The translations under genes and the position numbers were made by a program. Source: Malacoraja senta (Eukaryota). Taken from it: DNA of 64,000 bases. Of this stretch, positions 18,162 to 53,370 are shown in pieces. Under the pieces are notes generated by a model that saw only the letters and a list, made by a program, of their open reading frames with translations, had not been told where the DNA came from and made no database searches. The stretch is from positions 124,001 to 188,000 of the forward strand of contig JAXLNO010005921.1 in assembly GCA_038087875.1 (NCBI GenBank), given 5' to 3'. Position 1 is the first letter of the stretch, and every line of letters starts with the position of its first letter.

Positions 18162-18292
18162 NNNNNNNNNNNNNNNNNNNNNNNNNNNNNNNNNNNNNNN
18201 NNNNNNNNNNNNNNNNNNNNNNNNNNNNNNNNNNNNNNNNNNNNNNNNNNNNNNNNNNNNNNNNNNNNNNNNNNNNNNNNNNNNNNNNNNNN
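18162..18292. other. Assembly gap (131 N)
   Basis: Run of n. Confidence 1.
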
Positions 18293-21451: not shown

Positions 21452-22007
21452 CCAGACCAAGTGCAGATCGGGTCTGCTCCCCCAACGAAATATTCCAGCA
21501 CTCATCCGTTCCCCCAACGCAACCCGTTTGGCTTAAAAAAACACTTTAATCATGAATAACCCGGTGGGGGGAGGGGGCAGGGGGTGTGGCACTCGGCAGC
21601 TTGAGAGCCCATCGTGATTGGTGCACTGGAGGGGGGTGGGGAGGGGGGGAGGGGGGGGTGGGGAGGGGGGAGGGAGGGTTGGAGCACTGGAGTGCCCGTC
21701 CCTCCTGGAGTGGCCCTGTCCTGCCTTGCGAGTGCATTGTGAAGTCACTCGGATTTTGTTTCCAAAATGGAAGAGTTTGAAGAAATCAGACTGTTTAAAT
21801 TTTTTTTACGATTAATAACTTCGGAAATATAGGTGGAAATATGACGGGAAGATGTTTATCGCCACCACGGGAAAAATGTGAGTACGACGTGTGAAAATGA
21901 GAAAGCTGTGGCCTAGCATTAGGAAGAAGATAGCAATTAACCAGATTGACACACACAGAGACACATCGTGGGCACAAACAAGCCAAAGACTTTTAGTTAT
22001 ATAGAGA
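21452..22007 (-). mobile_element. Non-autonomous Helitron (556 bp)
   Basis: 5' A|TCTCTATATAAC and 3' GCAGA-cccga-TCTGC hairpin 11 nt before ...CTGG|T. The flanks rejoin as ttattgtcata|tgtcc with no TSD. Confidence 0.8.
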
Positions 22008-38894: not shown

Positions 38895-39392
38895 CATAGA
38901 ACATAGAACAGTACAGCACAATAACAGGCCCTTTGACCCACAATGTTTGTGCCGAACATGATGCCAAGACCAATTGTTATCTGCTTGCACATAATCCATA
39001 TCCATCCATACCCTGCATATACATGTGCCTATCTAAAAGTCTCTTAAATGCCACTATCATATCTGCTTCCACCACCACCCCCGGCAGCACATTCCAGTCA
39101 CTCGCCACCCTTGGCGTAAAACACTTGTCCTGCACATCTTTTTTAAACTTTGCCACTCATTGCAAAGCTATACCTGCTCTTATTTGATATTTCCATCCTG
39201 GGTAAAAAGTCAGATGGTCTACCCTATCGCTACTCCTCCCAGTTTGATATATTACTGTCAGGTCTCCCCTCAATCCCCGACATTCCAGAGAAAACAATCC
39301 AACTGCCCAGTCTGTCCAACTTCTCCCTGTGGCTAATACCCCACTAATCCAGGCATCATTCCGGTAGACCTCCTCTGTATCCCAACGGAAGC
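38895..39392 (-). mobile_element. CR1 3' fragment overlapping the end of the class I terminal exon
   Basis: CR1 frame IQRRSTGMMPGL...REKLDRLG; tail (ttctatg) near 38895. Confidence 0.85.
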
Positions 39393-39576
39393 TGATTGTG
39401 CTTCATGGTCACTGCAGTCCGCTGCTGGTCTCTGCTGTTGTCAGCTGGTCCCTGTTCATTGAAAGGTTTCATCTTTTTCCTCTTCTTCCAGCAACCAATT
39501 CCAAGGATGATCCCCAGGAGAATAAGAGGAACAATTACAGCTCCAGTCACGATCCTAATCTTTATATCTTCTTTCG
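39356..39576 (-). CDS. Probable TM/cytoplasmic terminal exon of the class I gene: ...KEDIKIRIVTGAVIVPLILLGIILGIGCWKKRKK...LPE*
   Basis: About 21-aa hydrophobic stretch followed by a basic stop-transfer KKRKK, on the expected strand and 3 kb downstream of alpha3. Acceptor ambiguous: phase-1 in-frame options at 39576 (cag|CG) or 39600 (aag|TC), both with weak pyrimidine tracts. Confidence 0.72.
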
Positions 39577-40803
39577 CTGCCATGTATTGATCAATAACGA
39601 CTTTGTAATGATTTTATTATCTACATTAAACTAGCACTGTTCATATCTAATTACAAAGTAACAAAGTCTTAGATTTATGTAATTGTCCAGACGATGGATG
39701 TTTAAATAGATCAATGAAAAATCTTTGAAGTTCATATTAGCGTTGAGATTTTATCTGCAGCATTTAATTATGAATTTAAAGAATCAAGCATATGTCAGAA
39801 ATAAAGATTCAAGATTCAAGATATTTTATTTGTCACATTCACATACACCCGGGTGTAGTGAAGTGAAATGCTTTTTGCCATTATGCAGCACAAAAAAGAG
39901 AAGAATACAGACATCACACCAAGATAGTCTTAACACTGAACATCCCCCCACAATGGCTCCCACCATGAGGGAAGGCACAAAGTCCAGTCCCCCACCCCAG
40001 TTCACCCATAGTCGGGCCCATTGAGGCCTCCACAGTTGCCTCTACGGAGGCCCGATGTTCCAGGCCGTTCTCGGCGGGTGATGTTGCTCCGGCGACGGGA
40101 GAGTCCTCCCAGCGGCCTGGGAACCCTGGAACGGCCGCTTCCGCACTGGGGGCCGCGGCTTCCGAAGCCAACAAGGCCGCGCCGGTTGGAGCTCCACAAC
40201 TGGCGCTCTCATATAGAGATCCCAGGCTCCCGGTGTAAAGTTCAGCGCCGCTGCCCGCAGCTGGTCGCTCCACAGTCCCGCAGCCCCGCGATGTTTTCTC
40301 CAGTGATCCTCAGCTCACCGGAGCTCCAGCGCGGCGACCCGGGCAAGGCATCGCCCGCTCCGCGATAGCGCTCCAGCGCTGTGCCGCCGCCGAAGCCGAG
40401 GCTCTGGGCGGTCCCCGACAGGAAACGCCGCTCCAGGCCTGCTGGTAGGCCGCGAGGACGGGTCGAAGCTGCAGCCCGGAGAAAAGCTGCCTCTCCGGCC
40501 AGGTAGGGACCCTGAAAGGTAGTTTCCCCCTTCCCCCCCCACACAAAAAAGTCTAGACCTCCAAAACAAAACACTTTACTGACTAAAATAAAAAAGAAAG
40601 GTGAAAGGACAGACAGGTCAGCGCCCCCGGTGGTCTATTTGCAGTGTAGAGGTCAACAAGGCTATTTTCTTATGTTGACCATTGTTATTTTAGCAAATAA
40701 AAGTGAACCCATTTATAGTTGATAAAACTTCAAAGGTTTTAAACTTTGCTGATATTTAAATATCTGAGAGTTTGATATTTTCACACACACACACGCACGC
40801 ACG

Positions 40804-40844
<41 letters not shown>

Positions 40845-41029
40845 TGCTACTTCAGACTGATAATGAGGTTGGATGTGGCACCACTATTGGCCTTTTGTGC
40901 AACTAACTACTATCAAAAAAATTAGCTAGATGCCCAAGAAATAAGATAAGAGACCTTGGCCAGGATCAGCCTATCTTGCTTCCTACATTTGGATGTGTGA
41001 GTTAAGGGTGACAAGAATAATTTTTACCA

Positions 41030-41820
41030 TTGGAGCAGAAGTAGGCCTTTCAGTCCATTGAGTCTACTCCACCATTCAGTCATGGCAGATCTATTTTTAC
41101 CTCTGAATCCCATTCTCCAGCCTTCTCCCTGTAACTTTTGGCACTCATACTAATCAAGAACCTATCATTCTCTGCTTTAAAATATGCAATGACTTGACCC
41201 ACACAGCTGTCTGTATCAATGAATTCCACAGATTCACCACCCTGTGACTAAAGAAATTCCTCCTCATCTCCATTTTGAAAGTACGTATTTTATTGTGAGG
41301 CTGTGCTAGACTCTCCCATTACTGAAAACATCCTATCCACATCCACCAACTGGGACTTTCATTAACTGGTAGGTTTCAGAGATTTCCCCCTCATCCTTCT
41401 AAATTCCCATGAGTAGAAGCCCAGAGACTTCAAACATTCCTCATACGTTAAATCAATCATCCCCAGGACATACTTCCTCTGGACCCTCTCCAAAGCCAGC
41501 ACATCCTTTCTAATATGGAGCCCAAAACTGCTCACAATATTCCAAATGTGTCTTCACCAGTGCCCGATAAATCCTCAGCATTATATCATTGTTTTTATAT
41601 TCTAGTCCCCCCGAAATGAATGCTGGCATTGCATTTGCCTTACTTACCACTGACTCAATCTGCAAATGAACTATTTGGGAATCCTGCACTAGTATTCCCA
41701 CTTTGTAGCCCAGATTTCTGAATTCTCTCCCCATTTAGAAAATAGTCTATGTCTTTATTCCGACTGCCAAAATGTAAAACCAGACACTTGCTACACTGTA
41801 TTCCATTTGGCTCTGCTTTG
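41030..41820 (-). mobile_element. CR1 3' fragment in the alpha3-TM intron
   Basis: KANAMPAFISGGLEYK...THLEYCEQFWAPY. Confidence 0.85.
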
Positions 41821-42577
41821 CCCACTCGGTGGAACTGCTGCCTTACAGCGCCAGAGACCCGGTTCAATTCTGACTACGGGTCCCGTCTGTACAGAGTTTT
41901 GTACCTTCTCCCCGGGACTTGCGTGGGTTTTGCCTGGATCTCCGGTTTCCTCCCTCAGTCCAAAGACAGACAGGTTTGTAGGTTAATTGGCTTGGTATAA
42001 TTGTAAATTGTCCCCTAATAAGTAAGATAATGTAAGTGTGCAGGGATCGCTGGTTGACGCAGACTCGGTGGGCTGAAGGGCTGGTTTCTGGGCTGTATCT
42101 CTTAAACTAAAACCACATTCCATTGACTATCAATAATTCTGGGCAATTAGATAACCACAAATTAATAATGGGTGGCACAGTGGCGTAGCAGTAGAGCTGC
42201 TTCCTTACTGCACCAGAGACCTGGGTTCGATCCTGACTACAGGTGCTGTCTGCAAGGACATTGTATGTTCTCCCTGTGACTGCGTGGGTTTTCTCCGGGT
42301 GCTCCGGTTCCCTCCCACACTCCAAAGAAATATGGGCTTGAAGGTTACTTGGCTTAGGTAAAATTGTAATTTGTCCCCAGTGTGTTGGTTAGTGTAAATG
42401 TACGGGATGATCACTGTTCAGCGAGGACTCAGTGAGCTGAGGGGTCTGTATCTGCACCATATCTCTAAAGTTTAAAGTCTAAATGCACAGCTTAGTTAAG
42501 AGTGTGAGTTGAGGCTGTTATCTCAGTCCAGGAGGTTTATTGTCTCAAGTGATCAGCCGCATTGACTTGCCACTTAC

Positions 42578-42853
42578 CCTGTGGAACATTGACTCCCTGC
42601 AGCAGAGTTGCATGTTCGATGTAACAGGAGAATTTTGCCACATCTTCTCTACTCAGTTGAATTGTATTCTTCAGCTGGTAAGTCCCATCCCAATTGGGCA
42701 ACAGATCATCACTGGATTCAGACTTGTGGACCCCCTCACCATCTCTCAGCCACGTTACATCGATGGCCCGTGGCTAGAAGCCTGTGACAAGGCAGGAGAG
42801 TCTCAGTGATTGCGACCCATCACTTTTAATCCCAATAAACACCTCAGAGGTTT
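42578..42853 (-). pseudogene. MHC class I alpha3 (Ig C1) exon with in-frame stop: (E)TSEVFIGIKSDGSQSLRLSCLVTGF*PRAIDVTWLRDGEGVHKSESSDDLLPNWDGTYQLKNTIQLSREDVAKFSCYIEHATLLQGVNVPQ
   Basis: Acceptor ttcttacacttgcag|AA, donor CAGG|gtaagt, 276 bp. Ig C1 motifs LSC, GF(Y)P, VTW, LLPNxDGTYQ and SCxxxH present. Absent from the ORF track because of the TAG. Confidence 0.92.
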
Positions 42854-44059
42854 CTGCAAGTGTAAGAAGCGTCAGAATCAGTGAAGACATGAACAAAAGC
42901 CTTCAATTGTAAGATCACTGCAACTCACCACTTTCCCAATCAGAGTTTTTTCTCTGGCTGAACTAAGTTTCCAGCCTAGACCCAAAATGCTGGAATAACT
43001 CAGCAGGTCAGGCAGCATCTCTGGAGAGAAGGAATGCCCAGAGATGCTTCTGACCCACTGAGTTACGCCAACATCTTCTATCTTCAGTGTAAACCAGCAT
43101 CTGCAGTTCTATCTTGCACAAGGTTTACAGCCTTTTCTCTTTTCATTTTGCATTTCTGACAAAACAACAAAACATTTAGTTTTAATACAACTGACATGCT
43201 CCTTATCTTAGCTCCAGACTTGAACTGACAGCACAGATGAAAGGGGAATGCAGGGCCCAATGGAGGAGTATAACTCACCATTGGGATTGATACTGTAGAC
43301 ATGATTGCTTCTATTTGTTCATGAATCTCAGCTGAATAATAACACTAAATATTCCAAGAGGGAATGGGAGGAAGAAGTTCTTCAACCAGAGAACTGTTGG
43401 AAATTGAATGTCACCATCCCAAGGAGTAATAGAGGCAAATAGAGAATCTGATTGGGTTTTTGATCAGCACAGCAACAGACCCTTCAGGCCACAAGGTCGG
43501 TGCTAAACATAAGACCAAGATACATATTCCTCCATTTCCTGAATATCTATATGACTGTGGATAAAGGACACTGGTACAATATTTATCTTTCACTTGCACT
43601 TCCTACCCACTGGCTCCATCTAAGAGGCATGTTGCCAGACAATTTACTGATACCCTCGCCCAAGAACAGGGTGGCGAAGCGATCGAGCTACTGCCTTACA
43701 GCGCCAGAGACCTGGGTTTGTTACTAACTAACGGGTGCTTGTTTTTACACAGTTTGTACGTTCTCCCTGTGACCTGCGTGGGTTTTATCCGAGATCTTCG
43801 GTTTCCCCTCACGCTCGAAAGACGTACAAATTTGTAGGTTAATTGGATTGGTATAAATGCAAATTGTCCCTAGTGTGTGTAGGATAGTGTTAGTGTGCGG
43901 GCATGGCTGCTCGGTGCGGTGTCGGTGGGCTTCCGAGCTGTATCTCTAAACTAAACTAAATAATTACTCAAGTGACAGCCTGACGTGCATGATATTTCCC
44001 ACCTGATCTATCCAGAGGATATCCTCTGGCCCATCAGTCAGAGTGCCTACGTCGTGTAC

Positions 44060-44341
44060 CTCTCCTCTGTAGTGCTTCTTGTCCACACTCCAGATATATC
44101 CGCAGCCACTTCACACAGTCCTTCTCCAGGAGATCTTTAAAATACTTGTTCATGAAGGTGTTGACATTCCACCGATCTGCTAGCATCTGGAAATCTGGAC
44201 GTAGTGCAATCCAGAACATTCTGTCCTTGTCAAAAGCACAGGCATCCTCCCCATCATAACCCAGTCTGACAAACCCATCAGTGGAATTGTCACTGTCCAC
44301 TTCACAGCCGCAGAAACCCTGCACAAAGAAAACAGCTTGGG
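44060..44341 (-). CDS. MHC class I alpha2 exon: (T)QAVFFVQGFCGCEVDSDNSTDGFVRLGYDGEDACAFDKDRMFWIALRPDFQMLADRWNVNTFMNKYFKDLLEKDCVKWLRIYLECGQEALQRR
   Basis: Acceptor cccctacctcag|CC, donor AGAG|gtacac, 282 bp open. Q..GCE, GYDGED, W133, RW147 and C164VxWLxxYL motifs present. Confidence 0.95.
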
Positions 44342-47126: not shown

Positions 47127-47387
47127 TCGAGATACCATGTTGCTGTTGGTAGACTATCTCAGCATTTCCTCTGACAATCCCATGAAAACCTGCAACTGTG
47201 ATGGCCATTGAATCCCATTGATCCTGCGGGAAAGACTGGGCCATCCATCGCTGTCTGGGAATAGCCAGCTCTAGTGTGCTTTCAAAATATGCTATCTGGA
47301 GGTCATCCAGCATTGCTACCATACTGTACTCAGGCAGCTCACTCAATCCATGGTTCAACAGGTAGTAAGATGCAAGATGGTGTAAAT
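47127..47387 (-). CDS. MHC class I alpha1 exon: (D)LHHLASYYLLNHGLSELPEYSMVAMLDDLQIAYFESTLELAIPRQRWMAQSFPQDQWDSMAITVAGFHGIVRGNAEIVYQQQHGIS
   Basis: Acceptor ttgtttatgcattgcag|AT, donor TCGA|gtaagt, 261 bp open. H3, L5, LPE, DD and IPRQxWM...W match non-mammalian class I alpha1. Confidence 0.93.
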
Positions 47388-48482
47388 CTGCAATGCATAA
47401 ACAATAATAAATATGATTGTATCATTCACTGAAAATAACTAAGAGTTATTAAACTGATAACAATACAATAACTTTGAATAAGGGAGTCACAAGGACCTGC
47501 AGATGCAAGTGCTGGATGAACTCAGTGGGGCAGGCAGCATCAATGATCAGGTGACAATTTGTGTCAGGAGCCTTTAGTTTAGTTTTTAGCTTAGAGATAC
47601 AGCATGGAAACAGGCCCTTCGGGCCACTGAGTCCACACTGACCAGCAACCCCCACACGCTAACACTATCCTACACACACAAGGGACAATTTACATTCTAC
47701 ACCAAGCCAATTAAACTACAAACCTGTACGTCATGGAATGTGGGAAGAATCTGAAGATCTCAGGAAAAACCCACCCGGTCAGGTGGAGAATGTACAAACT
47801 CCATACAGACAGGACCCGTAGTCAGGATCCAACCTGGGCATTGGTGCTGTAAGGGCGATAAGGCAGCATCTCTAATGCTGCACCACTGAGCCTTCTACAA
47901 GAGTTGGCTAGATGGGCTCTGATACCTATTCCACCAATTGTGGTCGAGGTATTGAATGATCCTATTGGATTGCTTCCCATCTTCAAAGATCTATTATTAT
48001 CTATCATGTCGATACAGCCTACTAGTTACAATATTCCAAAATTCAAAGAATATTTTATTATATTAAGAAAATGGACAACGTCAAGGAGATTTTATAAAAT
48101 CATAGAGAGGTAAAGTCAAAGAGTCATACAGCAGGGAATCAGGGCCTACGGCTGAATGGCCTAATTCAATCATGGCTGCTCTATCTCGCCCTCTCAACCA
48201 CATTCCCTGCTTTCGCCCCATAACCCTTGACACCCATACTGATCAAGAATCTGTCAATATCCACCTGAGAAATATCCATTGACGTGGGCTCCACGGCTGT
48301 CTGAGGAGGCCCATATCCTTCTAAACCTATCTATCCATGTACCAGATTAAATGTTTCTTAAATGTTGCGATAGTACCTGCCTGAACTCCCTTCTCCGGCA
48401 GTTCATTCAGTACTCCCACCAAAGCTATGCCTCTGGTTCTTATTAAATCTTTCCCCCCTCATTTTAAACTTATGTATTCATT

Positions 48483-50008
48483 TTTTGCCCATTTTGGTTT
48501 CACCATGTAGAAATTACACCTGTGTTTATACATAGTCCCCCCATTTCAGGGCACCATAATGTTTGGGACATGGCTTCGCAGATGTATGTAATTGCTCAGG
48601 GGTATTTAAATGCCTCCTTAATGCAGGTATAAGAGAACTCAGCATCTAGTCTTTCCTCCAGTCTTTCCATCACCTTTGGAAACTTTTATTGCTGTTCATC
48701 AACAGGAGGACCAGAGTTGTGCCAATGAAAGTAAAAGAGACCATTATGAGACTGAGAAACAAGAATAAAACTGTTCGAGACATCAGCCAAACCTTAGGCT
48801 TACCAAAATCAAACTGTTTGGAACATCATTAAGAAGAAAGAGAGCACTGTGAGCTTACTAATCGCAAAGGGACTGGCTGGCCAAGGAACACCTCCACAGC
48901 TGATGACAGAAGACTTCTCTCTATAATAAAGACAAAACCCCAATCCTTTACTAATCGCAAAGGGACTGACAGGTCAGAAACACTCATCAGGAGTCAGGTG
49001 TGGATTTGCCAATGACCACTGTCCGCAGAAGACTTCATGAACAGAAATACAGAGACTGCACTGCAAGATGCAAACCACTGTTTAGCCGCAAAAACAGGAT
49101 GGCCGGGTTACAGTTTGCCAAGAAGTACTTAAAAGAGCAACCACAGTTCTGGAAAAAGGTCTTCTGGACAGATGATACAAAGATTAACTTATATCGGAGT
49201 GATGCCAAGAGCAAAGTATGGAGGAGAGAAGGAACTGCCCTAGATCCAAAGCATACCACCTCATCTGTGAAACACGGTGGTGGGGGTGTTGTGGGCTGGG
49301 CATGTATGGCTGCTGAAGGTACTGGCTAACTTAGCTTTGTTGACCATTCAGCTACTGATGGTAGCAGCATAATGAATTCTGAAGTGTATAGACACATCCT
49401 ATATGCTCAAGTTCAAACACATTGGCCTCAAAACACATTGCCCAGCGGTTCATACTACAGCAAGACAATGATCCTAAAGCAACAAAGGAGTTTTTCAAAG
49501 CTAAAAAATTGTTAATTCTTGAGTGGCCAAGACAATCACCCGATCTGAACGCAACTGAGCATGCCTTTGATATGCCAAAGAGAAAACTGAATGGGGACTA
49601 GCCCCCAAAACAAGCACAGGCTGCAATACAGGCCTGGCAGAGCATCGCCAGAGAAGTCACCCAGCAACTGGCGATGTCCATGAATCACAGACTTCAAGCA
49701 GTCATTGCATGCATAGGATATGCAACAAAATACTAAACATGGCTACTTTCATTTACATGACATTGCTGTGTCCCAAACATTATGGTGCCCTAAAATGGGG
49801 CAGACTATGTATTTTGTGACTATGTAAATTGACTGCTGTAATTTCTACATGGTGAAACCAAAATGTTTAAAAAATTGCCTTTTTTTTAATCTGACAATGT
49901 GCACTTTAACCACATGTGATTTTTTTCTATTACAAATCTCAAATTATGGAGTACAGAGGCAAATAAATATATGATGGGTCTTTGTCCGAAACATTATGGA
50001 GGTCACAG
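48483..50008 (+). mobile_element. Tc1-like DNA transposon (IR/DR-type ends), degenerate DD34E transposase
   Basis: CKPLFSRKNR..LQFAKKY...WKKVFWTDDTKINL...KHGGGGVVGWACM, QQDNDPK and WPRQSPDLNATEH. Right end ...ggtcacag|ta at 50008; inverted internal repeats at 48483-48570 and 49769-49865; left end truncated. Confidence 0.9.
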
Positions 50009-51604
50009 TATGTACGATCAATTCACACTGGCCAATTTACCTCTCAGCCTCTCATCTTTGGAATATTGGGAGAAACTGGAATAACCAGAGGAAGCACACA
50101 TGGTTTCAGGGAAAGAATAAAAGTGCCACACAGGTTGTAGTAGAGATCGGGATTGAGTCCAGGTCCTCATAGGCACCATCTCTATGAGCTGCAACCCTGA
50201 AATGCCCATCTGGTGGGAAATCTCTGCATGGAATGGGGCACTTCTGACTTATGAGGACATTGGGATTCTGTAACAGTAAGTGTAAAGAAGACCTTACTGA
50301 TGAGTCCCGACTATCAAGGCTTGGGTGGGGTGGGAGGTGGGGGTGGGGTCGGAGCAGACTATAATAAACAGGGTCTAAACTGAAACTCGACACATACTGG
50401 AGTAACTTAGTGGGTCAGGCAGCATCTCCGGAGAAAAGGAAAAGGTGACGTTTCGGGTCGAGACCCTTCTTCAGACTGAGAATCAGGAGACAGGGAACCA
50501 AGCGATATGAAAAGGTACATAGAACAAATTAATAAAAGATATACCCCCGACTCTGTCTGAAGAAGTGCCTTGACCTGAAACGCCATCTATTCCTTTTCTC
50601 CAGCGATGCTGCCTGACTTCCTGATTTACTCCAGCTTTTTGTGTCTATCTTCGGTGTAAACCAGCATCTGCATCACCAGTCTGAAGAAGGGTCTAGACGC
50701 GAAACATCACCCATTTCGTCTCTCCAGAGATGCTGCATGTCCCGCTGAGTTACTCCAGCTTTTTGTGTCTATCTTCGGTTTAAATCAGCATCTGCAGTTC
50801 CTTCTTACACATCTAAACTGATGTCTAAACTGAAACATCACCTATCCATGTTCTCCAGACATACTGCCTGACCTGCTGAATTACTCCAGCATTTTATGTG
50901 TATTAACCAGCATCTGCATTTTCTTGTTTCTACATGAATAAGCAGTATTTGTTCTGTGATAAAGTTTCCATGCAGCACACCAGACAGTGTCAAAGTTCAG
51001 TGTCAAAGTGAGGTGAGAAGGGGCCCCAAAGGGAGAGTTAGAAGTGTCTGTTTCAGTGTTACCAAGAGAAACATAAGAAGGCTAGTGGAATACAGTAATG
51101 ATAAAATCCACGTGACTTCCCAAAACACTCCACAACCAAGGATTTTTGTTTTATATGTTATTATTTCAACAGGGGAATCACCATTTTATATTTACTTTCA
51201 TCTGATAACAATGGGATTAAACTTTCAGGATGAGTAGGTTTGTAATCTCCAAGCCTTCACGATTGTCAGAATAGTTAGAAAGGAAGCATTGTGTGGGAAG
51301 AAATTGCTCATCAGATTCCCATTAAATCTTCCCCCCCCCCCCCTCAATTTAAACCTATGTCTTCTGGTTCTCGATTCTGTAATCTGTTGAATATGTTGCC
51401 CACTTGAAAATTTCCAGATTTAGATTGATATATTTTTGTTCATTAAGGGTGTAATGGGTTAGAGCTCAGCCACAATGTCTGTGCCGAACATGATGTCAAG
51501 TTAAACTAAACTGCTTGTACATGATTCATATCCCTCAAGTCCCTACATATCCACGTGCCTATCCTCAAGCTTCTTAAATCTCATTATCGTCTTCTGGGGA
51601 AGTC

Positions 51605-53370
51605 GTGGATAGAGCCTGGATTGACACCTGGAAGTATGTTGTTGTGGCGATCAGTGACACATGGTTGCAGGAGGGCTGTGATTGGAAACTAAATATTCCA
51701 GGATTTCGTTGCTTCTGGTGTGATAGAATTGGAGGGTCAAGAGGTGGGGGTGTTGCATTGCTTGTCAAGGAAGATATTACAGCAGTGCTTTGGCAGGATA
51801 GAGTAGAGGGCTCGTCTAGGGAGGCTATTTGGGTGGAACTGAGAAATGGGAAAGGTGTAGCAACACATATAGGGGTGTATTATAGACTGCCTAATGGGGA
51901 GCGAGAATTGGAAGAGCAAATATGTAAGGAGATAGCAGATATTAGTAGTAAGCACAAGGTAGTGATTGTGGGAGATTTCAATTTTCCACACTTAGACTGG
52001 GAAACACTTACTGTAAAAGGGCTGGTTGGTTTGGAATTTGTAAAATGTGTGCAGGATAGTTTTTTGCAGCAATACATAGAGGTACCTACTAAAGAAGGGG
52101 CAGTGCTGGACCTCCTGTTAGGAAATGAGACAGGGCAGGTGGCGGAGGTGGGCGTTGGGGAGCACTTCGGGTCCAGTGATCACAATACCATTAGTTTCAA
52201 TATAATTATGGAGAGGATCAGAACTGGACCTAGGGTTAAAATTTTTGATTGGAGAAAGTCTAACTTTGAGGAGATGCGAAAGGATTTAAAAGGAGTGAAT
52301 TGGGACATGTTGTTTTATGGGAAGGATGTAGTAGAGAAATGGAGGACATTTAAAGGTGACATTTTAAGAATACAGAATCTTTATGTCCCTGTTCGGTTGA
52401 AAGGAAGTAGTAAAAATTGGAAAGAGCCATGGTTTTCAAGGGAAATTGGACACTTGGTTCGGAAAAAGAGAGAGATCTACAATAATTATTGCCAGCATGG
52501 AGTAAATGAGGTGCTTGAGGAGTATAAAGAATGTAAAAAGAATATTAAGAAATAAATTAGAAAAGCTAAAAGAAGATATGAGGTTGCTTTTGCAAGTAAG
52601 GTGAAAGTAAATCCAAAGGGTTTCTACAGCTATATTAATAGAAAAAGGATAATAAGGAATAAAATTGGTCCATTAGAGAGTCAGAGTGGACAGCTATCTG
52701 CAGAGGCAAAAGAGATGGGGGAGATATTGAACAATTTTTTTTCTTCGGTATTCACCAAGGAGAAGGATATGGAATTCTGTGAGTTAAGGGAAACAAGCAG
52801 AGTAGCAATGGAAACTATGAGATTCAAATAAGAGGAGGTGCGGACAGTTTTGAAAAATATGAAAATGGATAAGCCTCCAGGTCCTGACAGGATATTTTCT
52901 AGGGCAGTGAGGGAAGTTAGTGTAGAAATAGCAGGGGCTATGACAAAAATATTTCAAATGTCATTAGAAACGGGAATAGTGCCGGAGGATTGGCGTACAG
53001 CGCATGTTGTTCCGTTGTTTAAAAAGGGTTGTGAGAGTAAACCAAGCAATTATAGACCTGTTAGTTTGACGTCAGTGGTGGGCAAATTAATGGAAATGAT
53101 ACTTAGAGATAATATATATAAGCATCTGGATAAGCAGGGTCTGATTAGGAACAGTCAACATGGATTTGTGCCTGGAAGGTCATGTTTGACTAATCTTCTT
53201 GAATTTTTCGAAGAGGTTACTAGCGAAATTGATGAGGGTAAAGCAGTGGATGTTGTCTATATGGACTTCAGTAAGGCCTTTGACAAGGTTCCTCATGGAA
53301 GGTTGGTTAAGAAGATTCAATTGTTCGGTATTAATGGTGGAGTAGCAAGATGGATTCAACAGTGGCTGAA
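51605..53370 (+). mobile_element. CR1 ORF2 (APE endonuclease + RT N-part), interrupted by stops
   Basis: VGDFNFP, LDLLL, SDH; NYRPVSLTS...QHGF..GRSCLTNL...YMDFSKAFDKV. Confidence 0.93.

Follow-up and report, generated by a model that had tools for sequence, protein, structure and literature searches.

A non-classical MHC class I lineage of sharks and rays with an apolar groove, and a most likely inactivated copy in Malacoraja senta

An exon on the minus strand of a 64,000-nt stretch of the Malacoraja senta genome (hereafter the window) encodes an MHC class I alpha1 domain in which, according to a first-pass annotation of the letters, residues that hold the ends of bound peptides are replaced and the groove is lined by apolar side chains. 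The locus thereby raises the question of whether such a molecule can present peptides in the classical way or would hold a lipid or another hydrophobic ligand, and whether the answer concerns this one copy or a wider group of genes. The reading that we favour, with reasonable though far from full confidence, is that the gene belongs to a non-classical class I lineage, sister to UGA, that would bind a conserved hydrophobic, lipid-like ligand, and that the copy in the window was recently inactivated.

The window gene has one exon per domain and a phase-1 exon structure, which is the class I layout, and comprises the following features.

47127..47387, minus strand: alpha1 exon, 261 nt, phase 1/1, with acceptor ttgcag/AT at 47387 and donor A/GTAAGT at 47127 (slashes mark the exon borders).
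Within the alpha1 exon: codons of S7 (47368-47370), Q59 (47218-47220), and Q84 (47143-47145); H86 instead of the N86 glycan site.
44060..44341, minus strand: alpha2 exon, 282 nt, encoding G97, L143, R146, W147, L159, and Y171.
Within the alpha2 exon: free C99 (44310-44312), the cysteines C101 and C164 of the disulfide, and an N-S-T glycan site (44286-44288) that is conserved.
42578..42853, minus strand: exon of alpha3 (C1-set Ig), where an in-frame TAG at 42774-42776 replaces Y of the GFYP motif.
39356..39576, minus strand: exon of the connecting peptide, transmembrane segment, and cytoplasmic tail, with a terminal TGA at 39356-39358.

Borders and flanking splice signals of the ectodomain exons (alpha1-alpha3) agree with those of the ortholog in the little skate (Leucoraja). 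The alpha2 exon alone matched the Pfam family MHC_I above the cut-off (1.6e-16) and the alpha1 exon alone stayed below it (0.0016, 18.4 bits versus a cut-off of 28.3), while the Leucoraja ortholog matched both MHC_I (8.5e-23) and C1-set (1.2e-14). By the combination of PF00129 and C1-set, the window gene and its ortholog are MHC class I heavy chains. No further class I exons or paralogs were found within the 64-kb window. The Leucoraja locus L001 is collinear with the window over ~10 kb, with introns 86-92% and exons 93-97% identical. A second Leucoraja copy (L002, contig JAMYXN010000412.1) was rejected as the true ortholog, the window being nearer to L001; it is a decayed paralog with a stop at the alpha2 Cys164 codon, a one-residue gap in alpha3, and no aligned alpha1 exon.

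Several other elements surround the gene. On the plus strand, a 316-aa ORF at 51605-52555 with an endonuclease/reverse-transcriptase-type domain (LINE) sits exactly at the break of the Leucoraja collinearity, and a Tc1/mariner-type transposase remnant (HTH_Tnp_Tc3_2) with stops lies upstream of the alpha1 exon at 48600-49600. Dispersed SINE-like repeats at 47570-47890 and many other sites of the window have very high contig depth in all runs, and copies of another repeat family, whose core is ...gggtctcgacccgaaacgtcacc..., are scattered over the window. The intron between the alpha3 and transmembrane exons contains a GC-rich stretch at 40000-40600; G+C is ~0.49 over 40001-42000, and long ORFs overlap there on both strands. 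A run of 131 N occupies 18162-18292 (assembly gap or masked sequence).

Peptide-presenting class I molecules hold the termini of their ligand with eight conserved anchors, Y7, Y59, Y/R84, T143, K146, W147, Y159, and Y171 (PMC4364491). We inferred HLA numbers for the window protein through classical fish, shark, and chicken sequences. In HMMER, the alpha1 exon aligned without gaps to the nurse shark classical UAA (6lup; query 2-80 on chain 3-81) and to chicken BF2 (3bew; 17-80 on 19-82). The window has S at Y7 of 6lup and Q at the tyrosine of its PEYW motif, and extension of the 3bew offset by one residue beyond the aligned end places the window Q on the R anchor. Ten class I proteins aligned with MAFFT read Y,Y,R,T,K,W,Y,Y at columns 7, 59, 84, 143, 146, 147, 159, and 171. 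Because the gap-free HMMER matches and the MAFFT columns agree, the numbering does not depend on a manual alignment alone.

In the MAFFT columns, the anchor string is SQQLRWLY in the Malacoraja copy, FHQLRWLY in its orthologs, and YYRTKWYY in anchor-keeping class I. Five of the eight anchors are lost in the Malacoraja copy, W147 and Y171 are retained, and K146 is replaced by R; the loss extends into alpha2 (T143L, Y159L). Neither this copy nor its orthologs carry the anchor set of classical class I. The replacements that the first-pass annotation had read off by hand (Y7 to S, Y59 to Q, and R/Y84 to Q) hold codon by codon and in the HMMER and MAFFT columns, and Y7, Y59, and R84 were not restored by proper alignment to 6lup, to 3bew, or among the ten proteins. 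The N86 glycan site is missing as had been stated: the window reads H86-G-I, with no N-x-S/T, and the site is absent in all orthologs, which have a conserved N-S-T in the alpha2 loop instead. With five of eight anchors gone, the view that the molecule does not hold peptide termini in the classical manner is supported.

Scanned against 1.8 billion representative proteins, the alpha1 domain matched the 92%-identical little skate protein P0001 (XP_055486430.1, "MR1-like, partial") best, followed by matches of ~40% identity. The NCBI model of this protein is partial, and 12 of its residues, between the alpha2 and alpha3 domains, derive from an intron. When P0001 served as query in a word-indexed search, a single ortholog was recovered in each of Pristis, Mobula, Hypanus, Scyliorhinus, Heptranchias, Mustelus, Stegostoma, Hemiscyllium, Chiloscyllium, and Cetorhinus, and two ortholog entries in Pristiophorus. 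Orthologs were thus present in 12 elasmobranch species, with identities of 69-82% to P0001; identity to the window over alpha1-alpha2 was 67-92% including Leucoraja and 67-80% for the other orthologs. All orthologs bear the automatic NCBI name MR1-like. The lineage is conserved across sharks and rays, mostly single-copy per species, and anchor loss is a property of the lineage and not of the Malacoraja copy alone.

In a maximum-likelihood tree of the orthologs with UGA-like, UFA-like, and anchor-keeping sequences, the lineage formed a clade of its own (100/100), sister to UGA-like sequences (92/83) and with UFA-like sequences outside (94/93); the anchor-keeping sequences fell on the opposite side of the midpoint root. 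A UGA-like gene and a lineage ortholog occur together in the sawshark Pristiophorus japonicus, and a UFA-like gene and a lineage ortholog in Cetorhinus. Because single species carry two lineages side by side, we treat this one as a third lineage that is neither UGA nor UFA. Orthology to UGA (9CH4) was rejected on the basis of 37-40% identity, separate 100/100 clades, and the presence of both types in P. japonicus. Orthology to UFA (8GM8) was likewise rejected; the 8gm8 ortholog is a different protein (P0016, E 4e-90), ~27% identical to the window gene and outside the clade. UDA reportedly keeps 8 of 9 invariant peptide-terminus residues, and by this criterion membership in UDA was rejected, with 2-3 of eight anchors kept in the lineage. 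The shark UFA/UGA/UCA literature that we searched yielded no published name for the lineage.

The apolar lining of the groove was assessed at 39 pocket positions in the UGA-sister lineage, UGA-like proteins, and ten anchor-keeping sequences. The residues that the first-pass annotation had listed as apolar in alpha1 (M24, A26, M63, V67, F70, I73, V74, I80, and V81) are each encoded as claimed. The apolar fraction at the 39 positions is 0.69-0.72 in the lineage (window 0.69), 0.49-0.56 in UGA-like proteins, and 0.33-0.49 in anchor-keeping sequences, so the ranges of the lineage and the anchor-keeping sequences do not overlap; charged residues number 2-3 (window 2), 3-6, and 4-10, respectively. 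The apolar excess in the window groove is beyond chance, and the proposed apolar lining, 0.69 against 0.33-0.49, is borne out in alpha1 and alpha2 alike. It affects the floor (0.81 in the lineage, 0.59 in UGA-like, and 0.48 in anchor-keeping sequences) as well as the helix faces (0.63, 0.48, and 0.39). Mean alpha1-alpha2 GRAVY is -0.15 in the lineage, -0.62 in UGA-like proteins, and -0.65 in anchor-keeping sequences; in published data, human CD1 spans -0.06 to -0.45 and HLA-A2 has -0.90 (PMC4364491). Mean side-chain volume of the floor is 151 Å3 in the lineage, 161 Å3 in UGA-like, and 163 Å3 in anchor-keeping sequences, these residue volumes, like the hydropathy values, being proxies for the pocket and not cavity volumes. 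The smaller floor volume of the lineage is due to G97, C99, V/I114, L116, and A123. Across nine orthologs, 64% of the groove positions are invariant, compared with 47% in the rest of alpha1-alpha2 (permutation p 0.04).

An apolar groove need not be an open one. Bulky apolar side chains point inward (F70, M63, F156, M152, L159, L160, and W167), and HFE is among the sequence matches of alpha2 (1a6z, E 9e-11), as might be expected if the groove were occluded and the molecule, devoid of ligand, served as a surface ligand or receptor partner in the manner of HFE, FcRn, or MIC. We regard such occlusion as unlikely, since the side chains of the central floor (G97, C99, and A123; mean 151 versus 163 Å3) take up less volume than those of peptide-binding class I, the groove positions are more conserved than the remainder, and the modelled backbone described below is nearest to ligand-binding platforms (UGA, MR1, and classical; rmsd 1.6-1.9 Å). 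A groove that receives a hydrophobic ligand remains our preferred reading. Floor position 99 is a free cysteine in all ten lineage sequences, F in UGA-like proteins, W in the UFA-like protein, and Y in most anchor-keeping class I. The bolder proposal that the lineage is the unnamed third member, with UFA and UGA, of an ancient lipid-presenting class I group, and that its invariant C99 captures the ligand covalently as K43 does in MR1, is in our estimation very unlikely. At position 124, a second cysteine has been added in the rays and skates of the lineage.

Among solved structures, alpha1 is closest in sequence to 9ch4 (E 1.3e-21), followed by 8gm8, while alpha2 matches MR1 best (E ~1e-16, ungapped) and 9ch4 at 4.6e-14. 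We modelled residues 1-180 (alpha1-alpha2) of P0001, the 92%-identical Leucoraja ortholog, in place of the window protein with AlphaFold (pLDDT 93). The model has class I topology and matches 9ch4 best (Z 25.3, rmsd 1.6 Å over 178 residues, 37% identity), followed at Z ~24 by MR1 and by the peptide-binding class I molecules of fish and birds. The entry 9CH4, released 2026-03-18, is titled "Crystal structure of shark nonclassical MHC CLASS I, UGA", and 8GM8, released 2024-11-27, is shark nonclassical UFA by a title that was retrieved with the model of its ortholog P0016. According to a personal communication in a 2025 review (PMC12562908), crystallographic and mass-spectrometric evidence suggests binding of CD1d-type lipids by UFA and UGA, and UFA has been termed CD1-like (PMC10751288).

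The lineage and UGA share the motifs AGFHG and MNxYFKxLLEKDCV as well as G97, A123, M152, F156, T66, Q84, and L159, all of which except Q84 count as derived residues of the groove. UGA-like proteins differ in keeping Y7, Y59, K146, and the N86 glycan site, in having F99 instead of C99, and in their less apolar groove. With UFA, which is described as CD1-like and MHC-linked, the lineage shares the wider clade (94/93), G97, and the alpha1 core motif MLDDLQI..PRQ.WMA (E 8e-11), whereas the alpha2 domain of UFA has diverged strongly, carrying an insertion and a helix of another kind. Overall identity to UFA is ~27%, and UFA makes up an ortholog group of its own. CD1, the lipid-presenting family of mammals, birds, and reptiles, resembles the lineage in its lost peptide anchors and apolar groove, and the GRAVY of the lineage lies within the published CD1 range. 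Membership in CD1 was nevertheless rejected: CD1 was absent from the 60 best PDB sequence matches and from the 50 best structural matches of the P0001 model, and Pfam MHC_I_3 scored 22.7 bits, below its 35-bit cut-off. In teleosts, the L-lineage is a non-classical class I group without anchors whose alpha1-alpha2 is the most hydrophobic within its group and for which a lipid ligand is suspected (PMC4364491); this bony-fish lineage is unrelated, and its likeness to the shark lineage is one of kind only.

MR1, from which the automatic name derives, is not only the top sequence match of alpha2, with an alpha2 helix of equal length; its entries also fill the structural list at Z ~24, and presentation of small metabolites in the MR1 manner would be an alternative to lipid binding. 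MR1 captures its ligands with the Schiff-base lysine K43 and a basic/aromatic cradle (R9 and R94), of which K43 and R94 are not conserved in the lineage. At the positions aligned to these, the window has A at K43 (with no K within one residue), Y9, and G at R94. Overall identity to MR1 is 30%, and the tree, in which MR1 was not included, groups the lineage with UGA and UFA. We consider an MR1-type function extremely improbable.

A specialised hydrophobic peptide or lipopeptide, comparable to the leader peptides of HLA-E/Qa-1 or the N-myristoylated ligands of chicken YF1, would be an alternative to a free lipid. W147, Y171, and R146 persist, the backbone of the platform resembles that of classical class I, MR1, and UGA, with the 50 best structural matches free of CD1, and the structure of chicken YF1*7.1 bound to N-myristoylated glycine (9eb3) is close to the model (Z 24.0). 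Set against these points, five of eight terminus anchors are lost, including all three N-terminal tyrosines apart from Y171, and the nearest relatives are reported lipid binders (PMC12562908), and we judge a peptide or lipopeptide ligand to be quite unlikely. A hydrophobic non-peptide ligand for the lineage is plausible by analogy, because the groove is apolar and conserved and because the related lineages UFA and UGA have been reported to bind lipids.

The Malacoraja copy itself departs from the lineage. The TAG at 42774-42776 in alpha3 corresponds to TAC in Leucoraja and to Y in all orthologs. A contig of the public run X2, whose source is ~2-3% divergent, covers 42727-42917 with three differences, all away from the TAG; since its only differences fall elsewhere, this contig shares the stop. 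Contigs of runs X1 and X2 retain the ancestral P and R where the window alpha2 has Q and F. Upstream of position 39577, the window lacks 31 nt that are present in Leucoraja (L001 ~21900-21960) and contain the polypyrimidine tract and the acceptor of the transmembrane exon. The first three residues beyond the ancestral acceptor are conserved in rays and sharks, and the window is left with a weak in-frame AG. The Leucoraja locus has its leader exon, which matches those of sharks, ~9.9 kb upstream of alpha1 (L001:100-151). No credible leader exon was found in the window by a scan for ATG, hydrophobic stretch, and donor, by blastn with a word size of 7, or by tblastn with the Leucoraja leader, and the leader exon may lie outside the window. 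A candidate at 50407-50586 was rejected as part of a dispersed repeat.

S7, Q59, V45I, D36E, and L169R are private to the window. Derived replacements in alpha1-alpha2 number eight in the window and two in Leucoraja (chi-square 3.6, not significant), and private changes at otherwise invariant sites number four, three of them in the groove (F7S, V45I, and H59Q), versus none in Leucoraja. dN/dS relative to Leucoraja is 0.81, on 57 changes. The first-pass annotation had counted the loss of Y7 and Y59 towards a groove built for another ligand; the two anchors are truly lost, but S7 and Q59 occur in this copy alone and the lineage has F7 and H59. We therefore interpret S7 and Q59 as probable marks of decay and not as ligand design, because they are private to the Malacoraja copy and all orthologs have F7 and H59.

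No public RNA run of Malacoraja senta was found that holds the alpha1 exon. The RNA-like run X21, from a related species with ~91% identity over alpha1, has contigs at 42578-42854 and 47157-47387. Their ends deviate by at most one base from the borders of the alpha3 exon and coincide with the alpha1 acceptor, where the alpha1 contig carries 21 extra letters at its 5' end. From these contig ends and the extra 5' letters, we infer that the ortholog of this relative is spliced and expressed.

With the TAG recurring in the independent X2 contig and the acceptor of the transmembrane exon deleted, the Malacoraja copy is most likely a recent pseudogene. The contrary reading, that it still functions, would take the TAG for an assembly error, a rare allele, or a bypassed codon and S7 and Q59 for a shift in ligand specificity. 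It could draw on the stop being the only one, on the intact splice sites of alpha1-alpha3, on exons more conserved than introns (93-97% versus 86-92%), and on the weak in-frame AG that remains for the last exon. The independent TAG, the deletion of the ancestral last-exon acceptor together with a leader exon not found in the window, and the dN/dS of 0.81 over 57 changes make it highly improbable in our view. Owing to the TAG in alpha3 and the lost transmembrane-exon acceptor, the copy in the window probably binds nothing in this animal.

For the lineage as a whole, we propose the following mode of action. The clamp for peptide ends, a network of tyrosines, threonine, and lysine, has been replaced by F7, H59, Q/R84, L143, and L159, and conserved apolar residues line the walls and floor, with the small central side chains G97, C99, V/I114, L116, and A123. 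A non-polymorphic molecule, putatively associated with beta2-microglobulin, would hold one conserved hydrophobic, lipid-like ligand in this groove for an innate-like receptor, in line with the lipids reported for UGA and UFA.

Taken alone, the Malacoraja exon adds little, as it belongs to a decaying copy and displays two striking substitutions that reflect recent drift. Its value lies in the lineage to which it leads, which the automatic name "MR1-like" currently hides and misrepresents. The wider question is whether the first jawed vertebrates already presented lipids in the manner of CD1, and it was not long ago that UFA and UGA were proposed as CD1-like shark molecules. The lineage described here is the closest relative of UFA and UGA, and its groove is greasier than those of the UGA-like proteins and of the single UFA-like protein with which it was compared. 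Because it is conserved, has the greasiest groove among those compared, and is the closest relative of UFA and UGA, an intact ortholog would be a good candidate for ligand and structure work.
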